Below, piece after piece: positions 2,797-10,897 of a DNA stretch of 64,000 nucleotides (position 1 is the first letter of the stretch; each line of letters begins with the position of its first letter). The notes under the pieces were generated by a model. It was not told where the DNA came from, searched no databases, and saw nothing but the letters and a program-made list of their open reading frames with translations. The position numbers were made by a program, and so were the translations under genes. The DNA is taken from sequence record OP380601.1. The stretch is one strand, 5' to 3'.

Positions 2797-2803
2797 TATA
2801 AAG

Positions 2804-3007
2804 TTATTTAGAGCTACCTTCTGACACTTTATAAATTACACATATAGCAATACTTATAGGCCACATACATCCAGCCAAGAAGTAGTCAAACAATTCATTT
2901 ATATCAGGATATCTTTTCTGTTCAGCATCTCGGTAATCTATAAGTCCATATGCCGCCATAAACACAAAGATAAAAATAATATAAATTAATATCAAAGAAG
3001 TAATCAT
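2804..3007 (-). CDS. small membrane protein
   Basis: Two hydrophobic segments (ITSLILIYIIFIFVFMAAYGLI; FLAGCMWPISIAICVIY); SD GGAG. Confidence 0.65.
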   Translation of the reverse strand: MITSLILIYIIFIFVFMAAYGLIDYRDAEQKRYPDINELFDYFLAGCMWPISIAICVIYKVSEGSSK

Positions 3008-3034
3008 TATAAAACTCCATTATACCAGAAATGA

Positions 3035-3265
3035 AACGGGGACTATATCAAGCCAGTCAAAGCAAGATAAAGTCCCCGTTGTAATGCGCCCCTCTAGGTG
3101 AAGTTGAGAGACAACCTTTCGTGTTGTAGTAGGTCACACTACCCTCTAATAACGGGAAGCGTATGCGAGGTTATACGCCCTCTTTTCGTCTAGTGACTAT
3201 GTATGGTGTCACCACACCATTGACTACATAGTTTGACGCCGCTGGGGTATATTAATTACCCCTTA
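3035..3265 (-). ncRNA. candidate structured ncRNA A
   Basis: No ORF; six hairpins, including 10-bp perfect stem 3035-3044/3071-3080 and long stem 3196-3232. Confidence 0.45.
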
Positions 3266-3306
3266 CACTTAAAACCAATCCTCTTCGCGGATCATAAAAT
3301 GTCCTT

Positions 3307-3555
3307 TTAACTGTATTGATAACCGGAATTTGAACGTTTCTTTTCGTAATCGTCATCAACAAAAACGTCATGGTCGCCATGCAGAATGTCATGTTTCAAT
3401 TTGCGATCTCGTTGACGAGACAATACATTATATCGGTCTTTAACACCACTATCTGGACTTTTATTGTAATAATCTCCCAAGTCGCGGGTCACATCAATAC
3501 TATCGTACAATTCGTGGAGATGTTTTTCATTCTTACGGCGAACAGTTTTACCCAT
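3307..3555 (-). CDS. hypothetical protein
   Basis: 82-aa charged ORF with SD AGG. Confidence 0.55.
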   Translation of the reverse strand: MGKTVRRKNEKHLHELYDSIDVTRDLGDYYNKSPDSGVKDRYNVLSRQRDRKLKHDILHGDHDVFVDDDYEKKRSNSGYQYS

Positions 3556-3566
3556 ACCATTTTCCT

Positions 3567-3889
3567 TTATAGGCTTTTTATATACGTGATAACTCGTTTT
3601 AATATATCATCCGAATTTATTATTTCAATATCATCAAATGAATATTTTATTTTCTTAATTATAGTCTCTTTCTTCCATCCGATTTTTAATGCATCATTTA
3701 TGAAAGAATACCAATCTATAATATAACCTGAATTATACAGGGTTTCTATCATTACGTCTAACGGAACTCCATTAGTTTCATATTGATAGAACACGTTACA
3801 CAACACAGGAACACCATTGTTAGTATAACCATTTATGAAAATATTATTTTTACTTTTACGTCCTAACGGCTTGCGTTTAGCGGCGACAT
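3567..3889 (-). CDS. hypothetical protein, apparently frameshifted near its 5' end
   Basis: Open frame extends upstream of 3806 to about 3905 without ATG; SD GAGG plus ATG at 3889 is one base out of frame; YETNGVPLDV resembles the AlaRS YDTYGFPLDL helix. Confidence 0.5.
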
Positions 3890-3914
3890 ATACAACCTCA
3901 CAATTTTAGTTTAA

Positions 3915-4218
3915 CGGGATACAAATTAATGTGTCGATTTCTAGAGTCCCATACTCTTATTAGAAATCCAAAAATGATCTGGTCGCACCATCACCAGACT
4001 TAATAGCATTGGCTACCCGAGCCCACACATGTAAACCTCAAACACCCCAATGGATTACGCTTACAAGAAGGTCTTGCTCGTTACTTTACGCTTAGGCCCT
4101 GAGAAAGGGAATCTAAGCCATGTCTAATGTTTCCACTAGATACAGTCACTCTTTTACAAATACCGGTGGGCTAATTAAAGCGTCGATTCCCATAGACCGG
4201 ACTATTGACGGGAATCCA
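3915..4218 (-). ncRNA. candidate structured ncRNA B, immediately 3' of tRNA-Asp
   Basis: No ORF; hairpins at 3936-3968, 3978-3998, 4007-4052, 4090-4118, 4123-4140 and 4185-4216. Confidence 0.5.
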
Positions 4219-4221
4219 AAT

Positions 4222-4298
4222 TGGCGAGGATGACGGGACTCGAACCCGCGACCACCAACGTGACAGGCTGGTATTCTAACCAACTGAACTACATCCTC
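4222..4298 (-). tRNA. tRNA-Asp(GTC)
   Basis: GAGGATG acceptor, CTGTCAC loop, GGTTCGAGTCC, encoded CCA. Confidence 0.95.
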
Positions 4299-4303
4299 AT
4301 TTT

Positions 4304-4391
4304 TGGAGGAGAAGGAGAGATTCGAACTCTCGGAACCTTTCGGTTCACTCCCTTAGCAGGGGAGCAACTTAAACCACTCATTCACTTCTCC
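4304..4391 (-). tRNA. tRNA-Ser(GCT)
   Basis: CTGCTAA loop, long variable arm, TTCGAAT, CCA. Confidence 0.95.
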
Positions 4392-4396
4392 GAAAT

Positions 4397-4472
4397 TGGT
4401 GCCGAATGTCCGACTCGAACGGACCACCCCAGCGTTACAAAGGCTGTGCTCTACCAGATGAGCTAATTCGGC
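4397..4472 (-). tRNA. tRNA-Thr(TGT)
   Basis: TTTGTAA loop, TTCGAGT, CCA. Confidence 0.9.
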
Positions 4473-4484
4473 AGGAGGAATATA

Positions 4485-4745
4485 ATCAGGATCCGTAGAC
4501 TGTGATTACATCCTTGGTTGATACGCTATCACTAAGAGGAAGGGAAATCAACCATATTTTGTCCATCTGTTCGTAGTTTGGTTAAGGACAGTAACCTCTA
4601 GTTTCACCCTGCTAGTCAAGGGGTAGTTTCCATATCGTCTTTATACTACCAATCCCGCCTATAAATTACAAGCACTTTATAGGATATCCAGATTCTCTAT
4701 GGCTGGCTTCTTCCGGGGATATACGCCGTTATCCCGTTCTTGTGC
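4485..4745 (-). ncRNA. candidate structured ncRNA C, between tRNA-Pro and tRNA-Thr
   Basis: Seven back-to-back hairpins: 4488-4514, 4515-4554, 4560-4590, 4598-4615, 4622-4650, 4658-4683 and 4714-4736. Confidence 0.5.
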
Positions 4746-4750
4746 TAATT

Positions 4751-4828
4751 TGGTCCGTGTGGAAGGATTCGAACCTTCGATCTTCTGGTCCCAAACCAGA
4801 CGACTTAACCTGCCTAGCCTACACACGG
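4751..4828 (-). tRNA. tRNA-Pro(TGG)
   Basis: TTTGGGA loop in stem TCTGG/CCAGA, TTCGAAT, CCA. Confidence 0.95.
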
Positions 4829-4831
4829 ATA

Positions 4832-4902
4832 ATCTATTGAGTGGACTCGAACCACCAAAGTTCCGCAAACACCATCGCGGCTGCGTGTTGCCTACAATAG
4901 AT
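4832..4902 (-). ncRNA. degenerate tRNA-like element
   Basis: 8-bp acceptor-like stem ATCTATTG/CAATAGAT and T-arm GTGG-TTCGAGT-CCAC; aberrant D and anticodon arms; no CCA. Confidence 0.55.
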
Positions 4903-4904
4903 AA

Positions 4905-5110
4905 ATATATTTACCCCGTCTATATCTTCCGTTATCAGGTAAACCTATATGTCATTATATAAGCACGACCGAGGGAACTACAAAGATTCTGTCCGAGGGT
5001 TTTATCGGAACGTCTTCCAACTTCTGTTATTTGTCGGTCAAAACATCTACATTCTAACCAGCGTTGCGATTACAGGGTGTGAAACTGACTAAGAATCTAG
5101 AGCCCATAAC
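4905..5110 (-). ncRNA. candidate structured ncRNA D
   Basis: Nested stems GACCGA/TCGGTC (4967-5039) enclosing TCCGA/TCGGA, and ATTCT..AGAAT (5051-5096); no ORF. Confidence 0.35.
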
Positions 5111-5125
5111 CTAATTATAATCTAT

Positions 5126-5221
5126 TTACACATTTAACAAGAATCCACAATAACAGTCGTCATAGTCGTTACCACAAACGTTGCATGTATATGGATACTT
5201 TCTTACCTTGATTATTTTCAT
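5126..5221 (-). CDS. 31-aa Cys-rich micropeptide (CxxC...CxC)
   Basis: MKIIKVRKYPYTCNVCGNDYDDCYCGFLLNV; weak SD GAG. Confidence 0.45.
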   Translation of the reverse strand: MKIIKVRKYPYTCNVCGNDYDDCYCGFLLNV

Positions 5222-5237
5222 AAAAACTCATTAAAAT

Positions 5238-5314
5238 TGGTGGAGGATATAGGGCTCGAACCGATGACCTACTGGTTGCAAACCAGTCGCTCATTCCAAC
5301 TGAGCTAATCCCCC
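5238..5314 (-). tRNA. tRNA-Ala(TGC)
   Basis: GGGGGAT acceptor, TTTGCAA loop, CCA. Confidence 0.95.
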
Positions 5315-5319
5315 AAACT

Positions 5320-5394
5320 TGGCAGGCCCATGAGGACTTGAACCCCAGACGCACGGATTTGGAATCCGGCATGTTACCACTACACCATAGACCT
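5320..5394 (-). tRNA. tRNA-Trp(CCA)
   Basis: TTCCAAA loop, TTCAAGT, CCA. Confidence 0.95.
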
Positions 5395-5541
5395 ATTATT
5401 TTTTCGATAAACCCAGTTACTGAACGGACCTTATATTATGATCATATCCATTTCACAGCGCCAATCACTAGGACTTTATACTATTTATTGGATAAGATTT
5501 CCACAACTCCAATCATATCAATTATTAAGATTTACCAAAAC

Positions 5542-5625
5542 TGGTGGATACACTTGGATTCGAACCAAGAAGCCCGAAGGCTACGGTTTTACAGACCGCT
5601 GGCTTAACCATTTGCCTATGCATCC
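5542..5625 (-). tRNA. tRNA-Tyr(GTA)
   Basis: CTGTAAA loop, variable arm, CCA. Confidence 0.95.
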
Positions 5626-5632
5626 TATAAAC

Positions 5633-5708
5633 TGGTACATCGTGCTGGATTCGAACCAGCGACCCTGAGATTAAAAGTCCCATGCTCTACCTACTGAGCT
5701 AACGATGC
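5633..5708 (-). tRNA. tRNA-Lys(TTT)
   Basis: CTTTTAA loop, TTCGAAT, CCA. Confidence 0.95.
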
Positions 5709-5717
5709 ATTAAAACT

Positions 5718-5811
5718 TGGCGGAAGATGTGAGGATCGAACTCACAAGGCGCTATTAACGCTCGTCGGTTTTCAAGACCGATCCCGTCGCCTACCATCGG
5801 GTTGACCTTCC
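5718..5811 (-). tRNA. tRNA-Ser(TGA)
   Basis: CTTGAAA loop, long variable arm, CCA. Confidence 0.95.
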
Positions 5812-5818
5812 TAAACTT

Positions 5819-5936
5819 TTTTGTGTAACGGGACTCGAACCCGCACCATCAGGCGACTAAGGCCCGGTATTTACATACTTTTCAGTAATGGATGGAGTCG
5901 ATCCCATCATGTTCTAACCATTAAACTATACACAAA
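5819..5936 (-). ncRNA. tRNA-like RNA with the anticodon arm replaced by a ~65-nt multi-hairpin insert
   Basis: Acceptor TTTGTGT/ACACAAA, canonical D-arm TAGTTTAATGGTTAGAAC, T-arm GCGGG-TTCGAGT-CCCGT; no anticodon loop; no CCA. Confidence 0.65.
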
Positions 5937-5938
5937 TT

Positions 5939-6016
5939 TGGCTGGCGAGGTGGGACTCGAACCCACGACCTACGGTTTAACAGACCGTTGCTACTAACCA
6001 ACTGAGCTACACGCCA
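5939..6016 (-). tRNA. tRNA-Asn(GTT)
   Basis: CTGTTAA loop, TTCGAGT, CCA. Confidence 0.95.
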
Positions 6017-6066
6017 TACTAGTTCACGTTTCTTATCTGTTCATGATTTATGAACGTGAACACTAA

Positions 6067-6142
6067 AGGTTGCGAGTGGCTGATTCGAACAGCCGACCTA
6101 CAGGTAATGAGCCTGTCGAGATGACCACTTCTCCAACTCGCA
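6067..6142 (-). tRNA. tRNA-Met(CAT), probable initiator type
   Basis: TGCGAGT/ACTCGCA acceptor, CTCATTA loop; 3' end encodes ACCT rather than ACCA. Confidence 0.85.
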
Positions 6143-6152
6143 AGAATATTTA

Positions 6153-6385
6153 TAGTGTAACTGGTATCCCGAAAATTATAGCAAGTTAATTCAGATAACC
6201 CCGAAATACTCTTCTTACACTAATATTTAGGGTAGTCTTTTACCCTTCATGAGTCTTAGTCATTACGACTTGGCTACATACGCGCATCAACACCCCTTTT
6301 ATAATTTTAAAAGCTAGGGGACTCATACCAGCTTTATTGTTATCGTAAGGTCAATGACCATTAAATTCATGAGAGCTTACGACAT
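6153..6385 (-). ncRNA. candidate structured ncRNA E (possible pseudoknot)
   Basis: Stems 6153-6160/6215-6222, 6161-6167/6325-6331 (crossing), 6249-6255/6320-6326, 6258-6270 and 6343-6349/6376-6382. Confidence 0.45.
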
Positions 6386-6390
6386 TAATT

Positions 6391-6468
6391 TGGTGGGCCT
6401 ACCCGAGATTCGAACCGAGAACCGATCAGTTATGAGCTGATTGCACTCACCAATTGTGCTATAGGCCC
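6391..6468 (-). tRNA. tRNA(CAT), probably Ile2 (lysidine type)
   Basis: CTCATAA loop; GGGCCTA acceptor with C4/C5 as in TilS substrates; 1-nt bulge in the T-stem; CCA. Confidence 0.8.
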
Positions 6469-6476
6469 TTTAATTT

Positions 6477-6552
6477 TGGAGCGGGTAACGTGACTCGAAC
6501 ACGCGACATTCTGATTGGAAATCAGAAGCTCTACCAACTGAGCTACACCCGC
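6477..6552 (-). tRNA. tRNA-Gly(TCC)
   Basis: TTTCCAA loop, CCA. Confidence 0.95.
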
Positions 6553-6559
6553 ATAAATC

Positions 6560-6643
6560 TGGTGGGGATGGACGGACTCGAACCGTCACGCTATAAGCGC
6601 CAGAACCTAAATCTGGTGTGTCTGCCAATTTCACCACATCCCC
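6560..6643 (-). tRNA. tRNA-Leu(TAG)
   Basis: TTTAGGT loop, variable arm, CCA. Confidence 0.95.
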
Positions 6644-6649
6644 GAATTT

Positions 6650-6726
6650 TGGTGCGCCGTGCTGGATTCGAACCAGCGACCCACGCTTTAGAAGAACGTT
6701 GCTCTATCCAACTGAGCTAACAGCGC
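6650..6726 (-). tRNA. tRNA-Arg(TCT)
   Basis: CTTCTAA loop, TTCGAAT, CCA. Confidence 0.95.
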
Positions 6727-6740
6727 ACATTTATATACAC

Positions 6741-6771
6741 ATCATATCACGATATTCGATGGTGTGTAAAC
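6741..6771 (-). promoter_or_regulatory. early (sigma70-type) promoter of the tRNA operon
   Basis: GTTTACA-N18-TATGAT with TG extension; T4 early-promoter -35 GTTTAC. Confidence 0.7.
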
Positions 6772-6775
6772 TTTT

Positions 6776-7171
6776 TTATTTCGTCAATTGTTCATAAATT
6801 CTAATAAGATTCGATTTATAGAACGGGAAGTTCTCATTATACACCACTTCAGGGTCTGATGTAAACACCACACGATATGCAGTTCGTTTACCACTCATAT
6901 AATCAGCTTCCATTGTATCATCAAAATTGAATTCTGCATAGCCTTTTCTACGAAGAATTCGACAACTTACACTAAGCCAAGGACCACAACACGACCCAAG
7001 ACGTTTAATAATGTAAATCTCTTTATCATCCTTATTTAGGTAGCAATAAATTTCATCTTTTTCTTCCCATTCTGGGTCGGTCTGTTTATACAAGATACCA
7101 GATTGTACCAATGTCAGACCCTTCTTGACGAATTTAGAAACTCCTAGTTTGTATTTTTCATTACGTGTCAT
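6776..7171 (-). CDS. hypothetical protein
   Basis: 131-aa ORF with SD GGGAG. Confidence 0.65.
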   Translation of the reverse strand: MTRNEKYKLGVSKFVKKGLTLVQSGILYKQTDPEWEEKDEIYCYLNKDDKEIYIIKRLGSCCGPWLSVSCRILRRKGYAEFNFDDTMEADYMSGKRTAYRVVFTSDPEVVYNENFPFYKSNLIRIYEQLTK

Positions 7172-7188
7172 AAAATACTCCCATAATT

Positions 7189-7328
7189 TGGTGATACTAC
7201 TCAGGTGCTCGGGTCTATACTTCCCCGTTTACCGAAGCCCAGTTCCCACGCCGTGACTTAACCGGTGATTTATTAAGTGGATAAAACCGCTTCGCTTCCT
7301 TACCGCATCGCACCGACCTTTTCGTATC
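7189..7328 (-). ncRNA. 140-nt CCA-ended stable RNA, T4 species C/D-like
   Basis: Terminal stem GATAC/GTATC followed by ACCA; GC-rich; immediately downstream of an early promoter. Confidence 0.6.
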
Positions 7329-7335
7329 TAAAACA

Positions 7336-7366
7336 ATGATAACATATTAAAATATGGTTTGTAAAC
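7336..7366 (-). promoter_or_regulatory. early promoter
   Basis: GTTTACA-N18-TATCAT. Confidence 0.65.
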
Positions 7367-7368
7367 TT

Positions 7369-7746
7369 TTATTTTCCGTCAACAGTTAACCACTCACTTT
7401 CAACAAAAGGTGTATTTTTATTATGCATATTACTCCTTGCTAGGCGTAACTTCTTTTCTTTATTGATGAACGTATATTCAACATATCGATGTTCAACATT
7501 TATATTATACATATAAAGGTGTGTTGCTTCTGGGGTTCGTTCTCTGATAAACATAATAACCGCAGTTACAAGACCATGTAGATCAATACGAATAGACTCA
7601 TCAAAATAAACTCTTTGATTCTCTAGATGAACTATGTTAATTGGGGGTTCTCCGTCTTTAGGATAACCCCATACGGGAATATTTGTTTTTGCATCAATAC
7701 AAAAACACGGGCTATAAACTGTATATACAAATGCGTCATGGGTCAT
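7369..7746 (-). CDS. hypothetical protein
   Basis: 125-aa ORF with ATGA overlap to the upstream gene. Confidence 0.6.
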   Translation of the reverse strand: MTHDAFVYTVYSPCFCIDAKTNIPVWGYPKDGEPPINIVHLENQRVYFDESIRIDLHGLVTAVIMFIRERTPEATHLYMYNINVEHRYVEYTFINKEKKLRLARSNMHNKNTPFVESEWLTVDGK

Positions 7747-10812: not shown

Positions 10813-10897
10813 TGGTGCTTGTGGAGGGATTCGAACCCTCAATCCCGTAGGCGGGAGATTTTAAGTCTCCTGTGTATGCCAGTTCCACCACACAAGC
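10813..10897 (-). tRNA. tRNA-Leu(TAA)
   Basis: CTTAAAA loop, variable arm, TTCGAAT, CCA; isolated from the main cluster. Confidence 0.95.

Follow-up and report, generated by a model that had tools for sequence, protein, structure and literature searches.

Candidate portable small-RNA genes within the tRNA array of Aeromonas phage avDM6

The tRNA array of Aeromonas phage avDM6, a T4-like phage of Straboviridae, Emmerichvirinae and Ishigurovirus, is interrupted and flanked by non-coding sequences in which conserved modules, termed elements A to E, are found. The DNA analyzed is a stretch of 64,000 nucleotides from sequence record OP380601.1 (hereafter the window); the interval that contains the array is 100% identical to avDM6 and carries all of its features on the minus strand. 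The elements are conserved among phages, lie on the tRNA strand, adjoin tRNA genes and are distributed as separate modules, and covarying structures are observed for elements A, B and E. We consider it probable, though by no means certain, that the elements are portable small-RNA genes of a tRNA operon, which are released by tRNA processing and act in trans. The transcription, processing and stability of the RNAs, their action in trans and their target are what we infer from these observations.

The array spans positions 4222-6726 and consists of 15 standard tRNA genes, which are identified by ARAGORN, by the Rfam tRNA model and in the GenBank annotation of OP380601.1. These genes are arranged in the order Arg, Leu, Gly, Met, Met, Asn, Ser, Lys, Tyr, Trp, Ala, Pro, Thr, Ser and Asp, and the same segment holds two tRNA-like genes, S3 and tX. 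Most of the tRNA genes are separated by 5-10 nt, and the array is broken by the long gaps S1 (6143-6390, 248 nt), S2 (6017-6067, 51 nt), S3 (5812-5938, 127 nt), S4 (5395-5541, 147 nt), S5 (4903-5237, 335 nt) and S6 (4473-4750, 278 nt). A non-coding stretch, S0 (7172-7368), is located upstream of the array, and two others, S7 (3807-4221) and S8 (3008-3306), are located downstream of it. The original prediction, which was made from the sequence alone, described this cluster of 15 tRNAs with mostly short spacing and several long gaps, and ARAGORN and Rfam agree with it. The same prediction described five spacers free of open reading frames (ORFs) in the interval 3030-7330. The interval as a whole is not free of ORFs: annotated ORFs are present at 6776-7171, 3567-3752 and 3307-3555, and an unannotated ORF of 31 amino acid residues with a CxxC motif is present at 5126-5221.

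The spacers were compared with those of relatives by blastn, and a collection of 50,697 phage records was then searched for distant homologs. The avDM6 interval shares ~93% identity with phages 65 and 65.2, and ~81% with the Ceceduovirus phages (CC2, AP1, P19 and AS-sw). This comparison, which had been proposed together with the original prediction, resolves the spacers into modules. The identities between avDM6 and CC2 are 87% for element A, 84% for element B, 90% for element D, 94% for S7a (a hairpin module in S7) and 77% for element E, as compared with 70-80% for the flanking ORFs. At least five non-coding modules are conserved more strongly than the protein genes around them, which speaks for purifying selection.

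Element A (4551-4749) is an RNA of ~190 nt with seven helices, which forms the first part of S6. In avDM6, its 5' end directly follows the CCA of tRNA-Pro. The covariance model of this element, R1, has 15 members with scores of 137-212 bits. The consensus structure contains 30 pairs in seven helices, and compensatory changes are detected in 15 of these 30 pairs among the 15 aligned members. The fraction of paired cells is 99.1%, as compared with 81.6% for column shuffles and ~40% for slid controls. The invariant nucleotides in the loops and junctions include GACGAUA, UUGACUAGCAGG and AAACUAGAGGU. Helix 7 was considered as a mimic of an anticodon stem-loop, and this candidate was rejected, as the positions equivalent to U33 and the anticodon in its 7-nt loop vary. 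Three CUAG-type segments in helices 5-6 (4575-4610) change together in Ceceduovirus (CAAG / CUUG / CAAC), so that pairing in the hairpin loop and pairing in helix 6 are both compatible with the data. This hints at alternative conformations of element A, which are taken only as a lead, because the change represents a single evolutionary event.

Element A is 87-98% identical within Emmerichvirinae. Beyond this subfamily, it is found in T4-like Bragavirus phages of Proteus, Shigella and Morganella, in T5-like Novosibvirus phages, and in the jumbo phages of Asteriusvirus (121Q-like) and Alcyoneusvirus (RaK2/K64-1). It is always located on the tRNA strand, and is either unannotated or covered by the call of a tiny ORF. 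Between the Proteus T4-like phage Pm5461 and the E. coli jumbo phage 121Q, the element shows 92% identity across 188 nt, and the homology stops at its borders. Pattern scans of IMG/VR and metagenomes add a few members (loci L049, L053 and L054). In Morganella phage vB_Mm5 (PP397179.1; L068, 606-924), four tRNAs are annotated on the strand opposite to that given by ARAGORN, and element A is co-oriented with the tRNAs on the strand given by ARAGORN.

Element B (6216-6345), located inside S1, is a double pseudoknot of ~125 nt, and its covariance model, R2, has 16 members with scores of 74-133 bits. It is composed of the P1 hairpin, a short P3, the P4 hairpin with a GUAAU-type loop and the P5 hairpin, as well as two pseudoknots. 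In PK1, the P1 loop pairs with a downstream sequence across a conserved A/U-rich linker, and in PK2, 3-4 nt following PK1 pair with the P5 loop. The strands are therefore arranged in the order P1-5', PK1-5', P1-3', PK1-3' and PK2-5', followed by hairpins and by PK2-3' in the last loop. P1, PK1 and P4 together are 96.7% paired, and 11 of their 15 pairs are compensatory, as compared with 3-4 in slid controls. PK1 is paired in all 16 sequences (100%) with eight stem variants, and P5 is a terminal hairpin in all members with seven different stems. PK2 is likewise complementary in 16 of the 16 sequences, with six variants (GUU/GAC, GGU/GCC, CCGC/GCGG, CCAC/GUGG, CCC/GGG and CUGC/GCAG). A long-range helix between L1 and the sequence before P5 was also considered, and was dropped in favor of PK1, because only Aeromonas phages support it and its formation would compete with that of PK1.

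In the structural model of element B, an A/U-rich linker that crosses an H-type pseudoknot, together with a loop-junction pseudoknot that locks it, would form an architecture otherwise found in riboswitch aptamers and ribozymes. One reading of this complexity, which we regard as rather unlikely, is that elements A and B represent two new classes of complex-folded RNAs with an activity of their own, either sequestration of a ligand or protein or catalysis, which would travel in portable cassettes between T4-like, T5-like and jumbo phages and neutralize a conserved host function. The target could in that case be an anti-phage nuclease or a signal aimed at tRNA or translation.

Element B is found in Emmerichvirinae, Aeh1-like phages, the T5-like phages TS3, Akh-2 and AhSzw-1, and KVP40-like Vibrio phages, as well as in jumbo phages of the GAP32/CBB/BF/Yen9-04 type, which infect Cronobacter, Erwinia, Serratia, Yersinia, Pectobacterium and Xanthomonas. 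A pattern scan of 185,579 prokaryotic genomes gives 12 matches, and the only one that scores with model R2 is a T5-like phage contig binned into a metagenome-assembled genome (MAG). This 2.9-kb contig (L060, JBOFFJ010000157.1), assigned to a 'Phocaeicola sp.' MAG, carries a T5-like phage array with Asp, Asp, Glu, Ile, element B, Thr and Ser in this order, followed by others, and is almost certainly mis-binned. Scans of IMG/VR and metagenomes with patterns for element B add a few members (L026, L030, L047 and L048); most of the matches of the first pattern used in these scans are located inside a protein gene. Taken together, the families of elements A and B are widespread among large phages of Gammaproteobacteria and cross the boundaries of phage families.

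The 3' end of element B is located within ~5 nt of a tRNA 5' end in eight of nine lineages. HDV-like theta ribozymes are located next to tRNAs in gut phages, are pseudoknotted, and are linked to the maturation of tRNA ends (PMC10879173), and they resemble element B in that both are small pseudoknotted RNAs embedded beside phage tRNA genes. It is nevertheless very doubtful that any of the elements, element B being the foremost candidate, matures tRNA ends by self-cleavage or another catalytic activity as these ribozymes do. Such an activity would be consistent with a compact double pseudoknot that has conserved junction nucleotides and abuts a tRNA 5' end, and has a precedent beside phage tRNAs (PMC10879173). 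However, the strand order of element B is unlike the nested HDV topology, in which P1 encloses the 5' strand of P2 and P3 and is accompanied by P1.1 and P4, and element B does not contain this nested double pseudoknot. None of the ribozyme families in Rfam gives a match, either at E<=10 for avDM6 or at E<=1 for ten other loci, although the theta subfamily may lack its own Rfam model. A cut at this position is already explained by RNase P, and self-cleavage would leave a 5'-OH group on the tRNA.

Element E is located in S8, downstream of ORF 3307-3555. Its core (3087-3243) consists of four hairpins closed by a long-range stem, and the element spans 3035-3243 when the adjoining hairpin is included. 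The consensus fold contains 60 pairs and is 100% paired. Comparison of Ishigurovirus with Ceceduovirus gives 13 compensatory pairs, as compared with 0-3 for slid controls. Element E is found only in Aeromonas Emmerichvirinae. The adjoining long hairpin (3035-3080) is followed by a U-rich run and is terminator-like. Its pairs, at alignment columns 174-219, are invariant; the base of the hairpin, ACGGGGAC/GUCCCCGU, is also invariant, and is followed by UUUCAUUU in avDM6 or UUUUUCUUU in Ceceduovirus. This hairpin is not listed by the terminator scan. A sequence TGgTATAAT is located on its 3' side ahead of ORF 2804-3007.

Element C (7197-7322), a conserved non-coding module of ~125 nt, is located between a promoter-like site and ORF 6776-7171. 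It is 76-89% identical over ~121 nt in Biquartavirus and Tulanevirus (44RR2.8t, 31, 25, Aes508, phiAS4 and others), where the first tRNA, Leu-UAA, begins ~10 nt downstream of it. The tRNA-Leu(UAA) gene thus heads the array directly after element C in phages of the 44RR and 25 types; in avDM6, a solitary tRNA-Leu(UAA) gene is located at 10813-10897 on the minus strand, ~4 kb upstream of the array. The consensus fold of element C contains 26 pairs and is 99.5% paired, with only 1-2 compensatory pairs. The idea that element C is a fragment of the S-domain of RNase P RNA, which arose from the motifs GGUAAG and GGUAAAC, was rejected, as it finds no support in Rfam. Element D (3976-4119), a highly conserved non-coding module of ~145 nt, is 90-93% identical across Emmerichvirinae, as compared with 70-80% for the neighboring ORFs, and its 3' end is located 7 nt from tRNA-Trp in Ceceduovirus. 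Its consensus fold contains 42 pairs and is 98.6% paired, with three compensatory pairs. Elements C and D vary so little that covariation cannot be judged.

The covariation detected for elements A, B and E points to selection at the RNA level and supports the claim of the original prediction that the spacers hold discrete, conserved and structured RNAs. It also bears on the quite improbable alternative that the spacers are composed of debris and ordinary signals, such as decayed tRNA genes, scars of homing endonucleases or ORFs, promoters and terminators. This explanation is true for S2, S4 and tX, which are present only in avDM6, and for parts of S1 and S5. In addition, additional small ORFs or genes for HNH/homing endonucleases occupy these gaps in 65, 65.2, P19 and ZPAH1, and promoter- or terminator-like sequences are present in S1, S4, the tail of S6 and the end of element E. 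However, it fails for elements A, B, D and E, which are more conserved than coding genes, and is refuted for elements A, B and E by many compensatory substitutions; elements A and B are also retained in several phage families. The other parts of the spacers are promoter-like sequences, a micro-ORF, a terminator-like hairpin and insertions specific to avDM6.

Protein-coding and host origins of elements A and B were also considered and rejected. No reading frame is conserved over these elements; the stop-free stretches are 17-44 codons long and vary between homologs, and the coding sequences (CDSs) called in public records are short and inconsistent. Such small CDSs are 121Q gp129 (L009, 1389-1472), Vibrio K566 0370 (L017, 598-693), GAP32_439A (L016, 650-808) and the 3' end of Aeh1p183 (L014, 296-628), and they have probably been called as genes in error; an unannotated tRNA (L016, 714-785) lies under GAP32_439A as well. 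Regarding host origin, a search of 5,426 complete E. coli genomes gives no match to element A, and the scan of the genome collection for element B gave only the mis-binned phage contig.

Rfam 15, searched both at the gathering score and permissively, gives no match to any of the elements (E<=10 for avDM6 2800-7600 and E<=1 for ten related loci). The Rfam scan proposed with the original prediction thus returns only tRNAs and noise in the window and in these loci. The elements are not annotated in any public record examined, and a full-text literature search for the core motif strings gives only unrelated primer matches and no paper that prints the motifs. Within this scope, which takes in Rfam 15 and leaves aside the set of 10,006 viral candidates in PMC10690425, the elements appear to represent undescribed structured-RNA families.

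The phages that carry element A are not the same set as those that carry element B, the adjoining tRNAs vary as well, and elements A, B, C, D and E differ in their phylogenetic distributions, each occurring singly in other phages. The modules occur independently of one another, and therefore they are not pieces of one large RNA, as the original prediction had suggested as one possibility. GOLLD and ROOL, to which a kinship had also been suggested, are single RNAs of ~500-800 nt, found mostly in Firmicutes and in other non-proteobacterial contexts. Like the avDM6 elements, they are non-coding, structured and often found as neighbors of phage and prophage tRNA genes, but avDM6 contains independent modules of 120-200 nt that are separated by tRNAs, none of which exceeds 500 nt of contiguous sequence. 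It is extremely improbable that a single large, ornate RNA of the GOLLD/ROOL type, split by tRNAs, makes up the spacers. The frequent location of GOLLD and ROOL near phage tRNAs would favor this explanation (cf. PMC12286853). Against it stand the lack of an Rfam match, which also leaves the suggested kinship unsupported, the different distributions of elements A to E with their single occurrence elsewhere, and the fact that no covarying long-range pairing is seen between the spacers.

In the maturation of polycistronic tRNAs, RNase P cuts the 5' ends, and RNase E and exonucleases act after the CCA. Given this background, the array is best explained as a probable mosaic of tRNA genes and independent, portable small-RNA genes. 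Phage promoters would drive the transcription of the whole array into polycistronic precursors, and the tRNA-maturing enzymes would also free the intervening RNAs, by the action of RNase P at the 5' end of each tRNA and that of RNase E and 3' trimming exonucleases after each CCA. The products would be discrete, compact RNAs of ~120-200 nt, namely elements A, B, C and D, the tRNA-like S3, and element E in the 3' region. The ends of elements A and B are located within ~5 nt of the 5' end of the next tRNA in most lineages. Because the elements always share the strand of the tRNAs and often end exactly at the start of one, their release by tRNA processing is plausible, in agreement with the original prediction that the spacer elements adjoin tRNA ends. 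Elements A and B are read as cassettes transferred among large phages of Gammaproteobacteria that are not related to one another, and most likely act in trans on a conserved tRNA or translation factor of the host or phage, as an inhibitor, a decoy or a component of a ribonucleoprotein (RNP).

The position of the elements, strictly in or beside tRNA arrays, on the tRNA strand and with ends that coincide with tRNA ends, would also be expected if they act in cis on the precursor tRNA, as folding insulators, as entry sites for RNase E or RNase III, or as protective structures, which would ensure that neighboring tRNAs mature properly and in the right stoichiometry, and are inert once excised. The short hairpins of S7a and the S6 tail, which are conserved and directly adjoin tRNAs, agree with such a role. 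This alternative has to be taken seriously, but is unlikely. Most tRNAs of the same array are matured with spacers of only 5-10 nt, and the neighboring tRNA species differ between phages. Element A or B is present without flanking tRNAs on one or both sides in 121Q, in K64-1 and in one IMG/VR contig. Moreover, invariant loop and junction nucleotides and double pseudoknots that are maintained across three phage families exceed what a spacer or a nuclease site needs. Action in trans is favored over action in cis, because elements A and B have moved between phages, keep invariant unpaired nucleotides, and need no particular neighboring tRNA.

Several points weigh against release by tRNA processing and action in trans. 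No sequence feature points to a specific target, and the helix 7 loop of element A is not conserved at the positions equivalent to the anticodon. Most of the variation of element A separates two clades, and therefore the effective number of independent events is small; the controls for element A ignore phylogeny, so that significance is overstated. Elements C and D are almost without covariation, and their structures are predictions. The single-sequence folding energies of elements A, B, C and D are no better than those of shuffles. Finally, elements that were recently transferred along with tRNA genes could be highly identical between phage families without having a function, although recent transfer would leave the compensatory changes unexplained.

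The folding energies were expressed as z-scores of the minimum free energy (MFE) against dinucleotide shuffles, with 200-nt coding segments as the background (-0.8 +/- 1.2). The z-scores of S0 (+1.1), S5 (+1.1), S6 (-0.2), S7 (-1.1) and S1 (-1.6) are near or above the background. With refined borders, the values are +0.6 for element A, -1.2 for element B, +0.4 for element C, -0.8 for element D and -4.4 for element E. The outliers are S8 (-3.8; -4.4 for the core of element E), S4 (-3.3) and S2 (-2.1 to -2.2). Folding stability was dropped as a criterion, because the best-supported elements, A and B, score near zero. Element B is a compact double pseudoknot, and is therefore missed by MFE folding. 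The original prediction had held that the spacers contain stems beyond chance, and had named dinucleotide-shuffled sequences as the control. Most of the spacers fail this comparison, and the claim survives only for E/S8, S4 and S2, which exceed the shuffles. Thus, the original prediction saw something real for a partly wrong reason; the structures are conspicuous evolutionarily, not thermodynamically.

The known RNAs to which the elements are best compared are RNA C and RNA D of T4 (species 1 and 2; rnaC and rnaD), which are stable RNAs of 119-139 nt encoded at the end of the tRNA cluster and detected on Northern blots, and whose function is still listed as unknown in the literature (PMC3014915, PMC9697503). 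The original prediction had pointed to these RNAs, and the analogy is the right one. In both cases, small RNAs are encoded in the tRNA cluster of a T4-like phage, on the tRNA strand, and abut a tRNA: element A follows the CCA of tRNA-Pro, and the ends of elements B, C and D are 0-10 nt from tRNAs in relatives. In addition, T4 RNA C has a tRNA-type T arm and a pseudo-acceptor stem, and resembles the avDM6 S3 in this respect. However, the T4 RNAs are similar to elements A, B, C, D and E neither in sequence nor by covariance models. Searches of the window and all loci with T4 rnaC and rnaD by blastn and nhmmer give only chance matches and a generic match to the T arm, and models R1 and R2 give no hit in the T4 tRNA region. 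T4 RNA C and RNA D are located together at the end of the array, whereas the avDM6 modules are scattered through it, and elements A and B, unlike the T4 RNAs, are also present in T5-like and jumbo phages. Elements A and B may be functional analogues of RNA C and RNA D.

The stable RNAs of the T4 tRNA region have been without a function for ~fifty years, and the avDM6 locus suggests that they are not an oddity of T4. Large phages of Gammaproteobacteria carry a repertoire of conserved, covarying and portable RNA modules in their tRNA arrays. With defined borders and a structure model for each, elements A and B are concrete candidates for the study of RNAs in phage tRNA arrays, and should help to improve the annotation of phage genomes. 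If the elements are counter-defense or host-takeover RNAs, they would add an RNA layer to the conflict between phage and host around tRNA and translation.

The original prediction had listed three tRNA mimics, two of which are present (S3 and tX), while the third is not found. The S3 tRNA-like RNA (5820-5936) matches the Rfam tRNA model (RF00005) with 44.1 bits, as compared with a gathering score of 29. Its acceptor, D and T arms align to the model, and 59 nt replace 15 positions of the anticodon arm of the model. The anticodon-like arm has a loop of 8 nt in avDM6 and 7 nt in phage 65, and a two-hairpin region of ~40 nt is present in place of the variable region. ARAGORN does not call S3, which falls outside the range for a standard anticodon arm and variable region. 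S3 is 87.5% identical in 65 and 65.2, and is annotated as 'tRNA-OTHER' in 65.2; the alignment rows reveal a compensatory change from A-U to G-C in one of its hairpins. The tX remnant (4831-4902) is called 'tRNA-???' by ARAGORN with a 4-nt anticodon, ggtg. It has an 8-bp acceptor stem, a T arm and a central hairpin, and no D arm, with an MFE z-score of -1.6. It does not match the Rfam tRNA model at E<=10 and has no homolog in the phage collection, being unique to avDM6.

S3 and tX resemble the mimics of the YrlA type (RF02553) in that the acceptor and T arms are kept and the decoding part is altered. However, the hits to the YrlA model are weak (17-26 bits, as compared with a gathering score of 69), and fall on true tRNAs only, not on the spacers. 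It is possible that the RNAs serve as decoys for anticodon nucleases, as the original prediction had proposed, although the sequences give this role no specific support and do not point to an anticodon-loop mimic. The tRNA-like S3 would be the most natural candidate for such a decoy.

The remaining spacer pieces are more varied. S2, a hairpin spacer between tRNA-Met and tRNA-Asn, and S4, a long imperfect hairpin between tRNA-Tyr and tRNA-Trp that contains a promoter-like site, are specific to avDM6. In phage 65, both are absent, and the Met-Asn and Tyr-Trp pairs are each 6 nt apart. The sole match of S4 in the phage records is avDM6 itself, and S2 has no homolog in them either. S2, S4, tX and S5b are not repeated elsewhere in the window. 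The 3' part of S1 (6143-6215) is promoter-like and is conserved only in phage 65. It includes TATAAATA at 6147-6154, 5 nt upstream of the second tRNA-Met. This motif is not enriched in the window (8 found versus 10 expected), and is therefore taken only as a lead.

S5 is a mosaic of a micro-ORF, a promoter-like sequence and two short conserved motifs. The micro-ORF (5126-5221), which encodes the 31 residues with a CxxC...CxC pattern, is 97% identical at the nucleotide level in phage 65, and has no PHROG or Pfam match. The first motif (5075-5105, 31 nt) is conserved in many Aeromonas T4-like phages. The second motif (4993-5037, ~45 nt), AGAAGUUGGAAGACGUUCYGAUAAAAYCCUCGGA, directly follows a tRNA 3' end in Karamvirus, Tulanevirus and Ceceduovirus (L075, ~307-350; L074, ~520-570; L005, 4449-4490), and may be another small conserved module. 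The S6 tail (4473-4550), located between element A and tRNA-Thr, contains two short hairpins and a promoter-like ATCACA-16-TATATT sequence; it is 90% identical to that of CC2 and restricted to Aeromonas Emmerichvirinae. S7a (4152-4221), a hairpin module of 70 nt that immediately follows tRNA-Asp at the end of the array, is conserved. It is 94-96% identical in Ceceduovirus, where it is located after tRNA-Thr.

A promoter-like site of the sigma-70/T4-early type, TTTACA-18-TATCAT with TG (7336-7365), is located at the head of the unit, and a second one (6741-6770) is located just upstream of tRNA-Arg. Both match the consensus at 10 of 12 positions, and are promoters predicted by this match only. 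The ORF of 131 amino acid residues between element C and the array (6776-7171) belongs to PHROG 17440 (E=1e-70, category unknown function) and has no Pfam match. For ten flanking proteins, PHROGs and Pfam give only categories of unknown function, and no Rsr/Ro gene is found among them; thus, they provide no clue to a partner. Upstream of ORF 3567-3806, its frame continues without a stop for ~100 nt (3807-3912), in a region that lacks ATG, GTG or TTG and is conserved (87% to CC2). An 8-codon ATG ORF with a GAGG Shine-Dalgarno sequence is present at 3889-3863 in another frame. The 3807-3912 region could represent a non-canonical start, a frameshift or an upstream ORF.

The gaps between the tRNAs of the relatives (65 and 65.2, which are L002 and L003; L004, 4951-5454; L008, 5587-5946) contain extra small ORFs, a putative homing endonuclease gene and an HNH nuclease gene, and 65.2 has a second 'tRNA-OTHER' that is missing in avDM6. 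The tRNA array is a hotspot for insertion and deletion.

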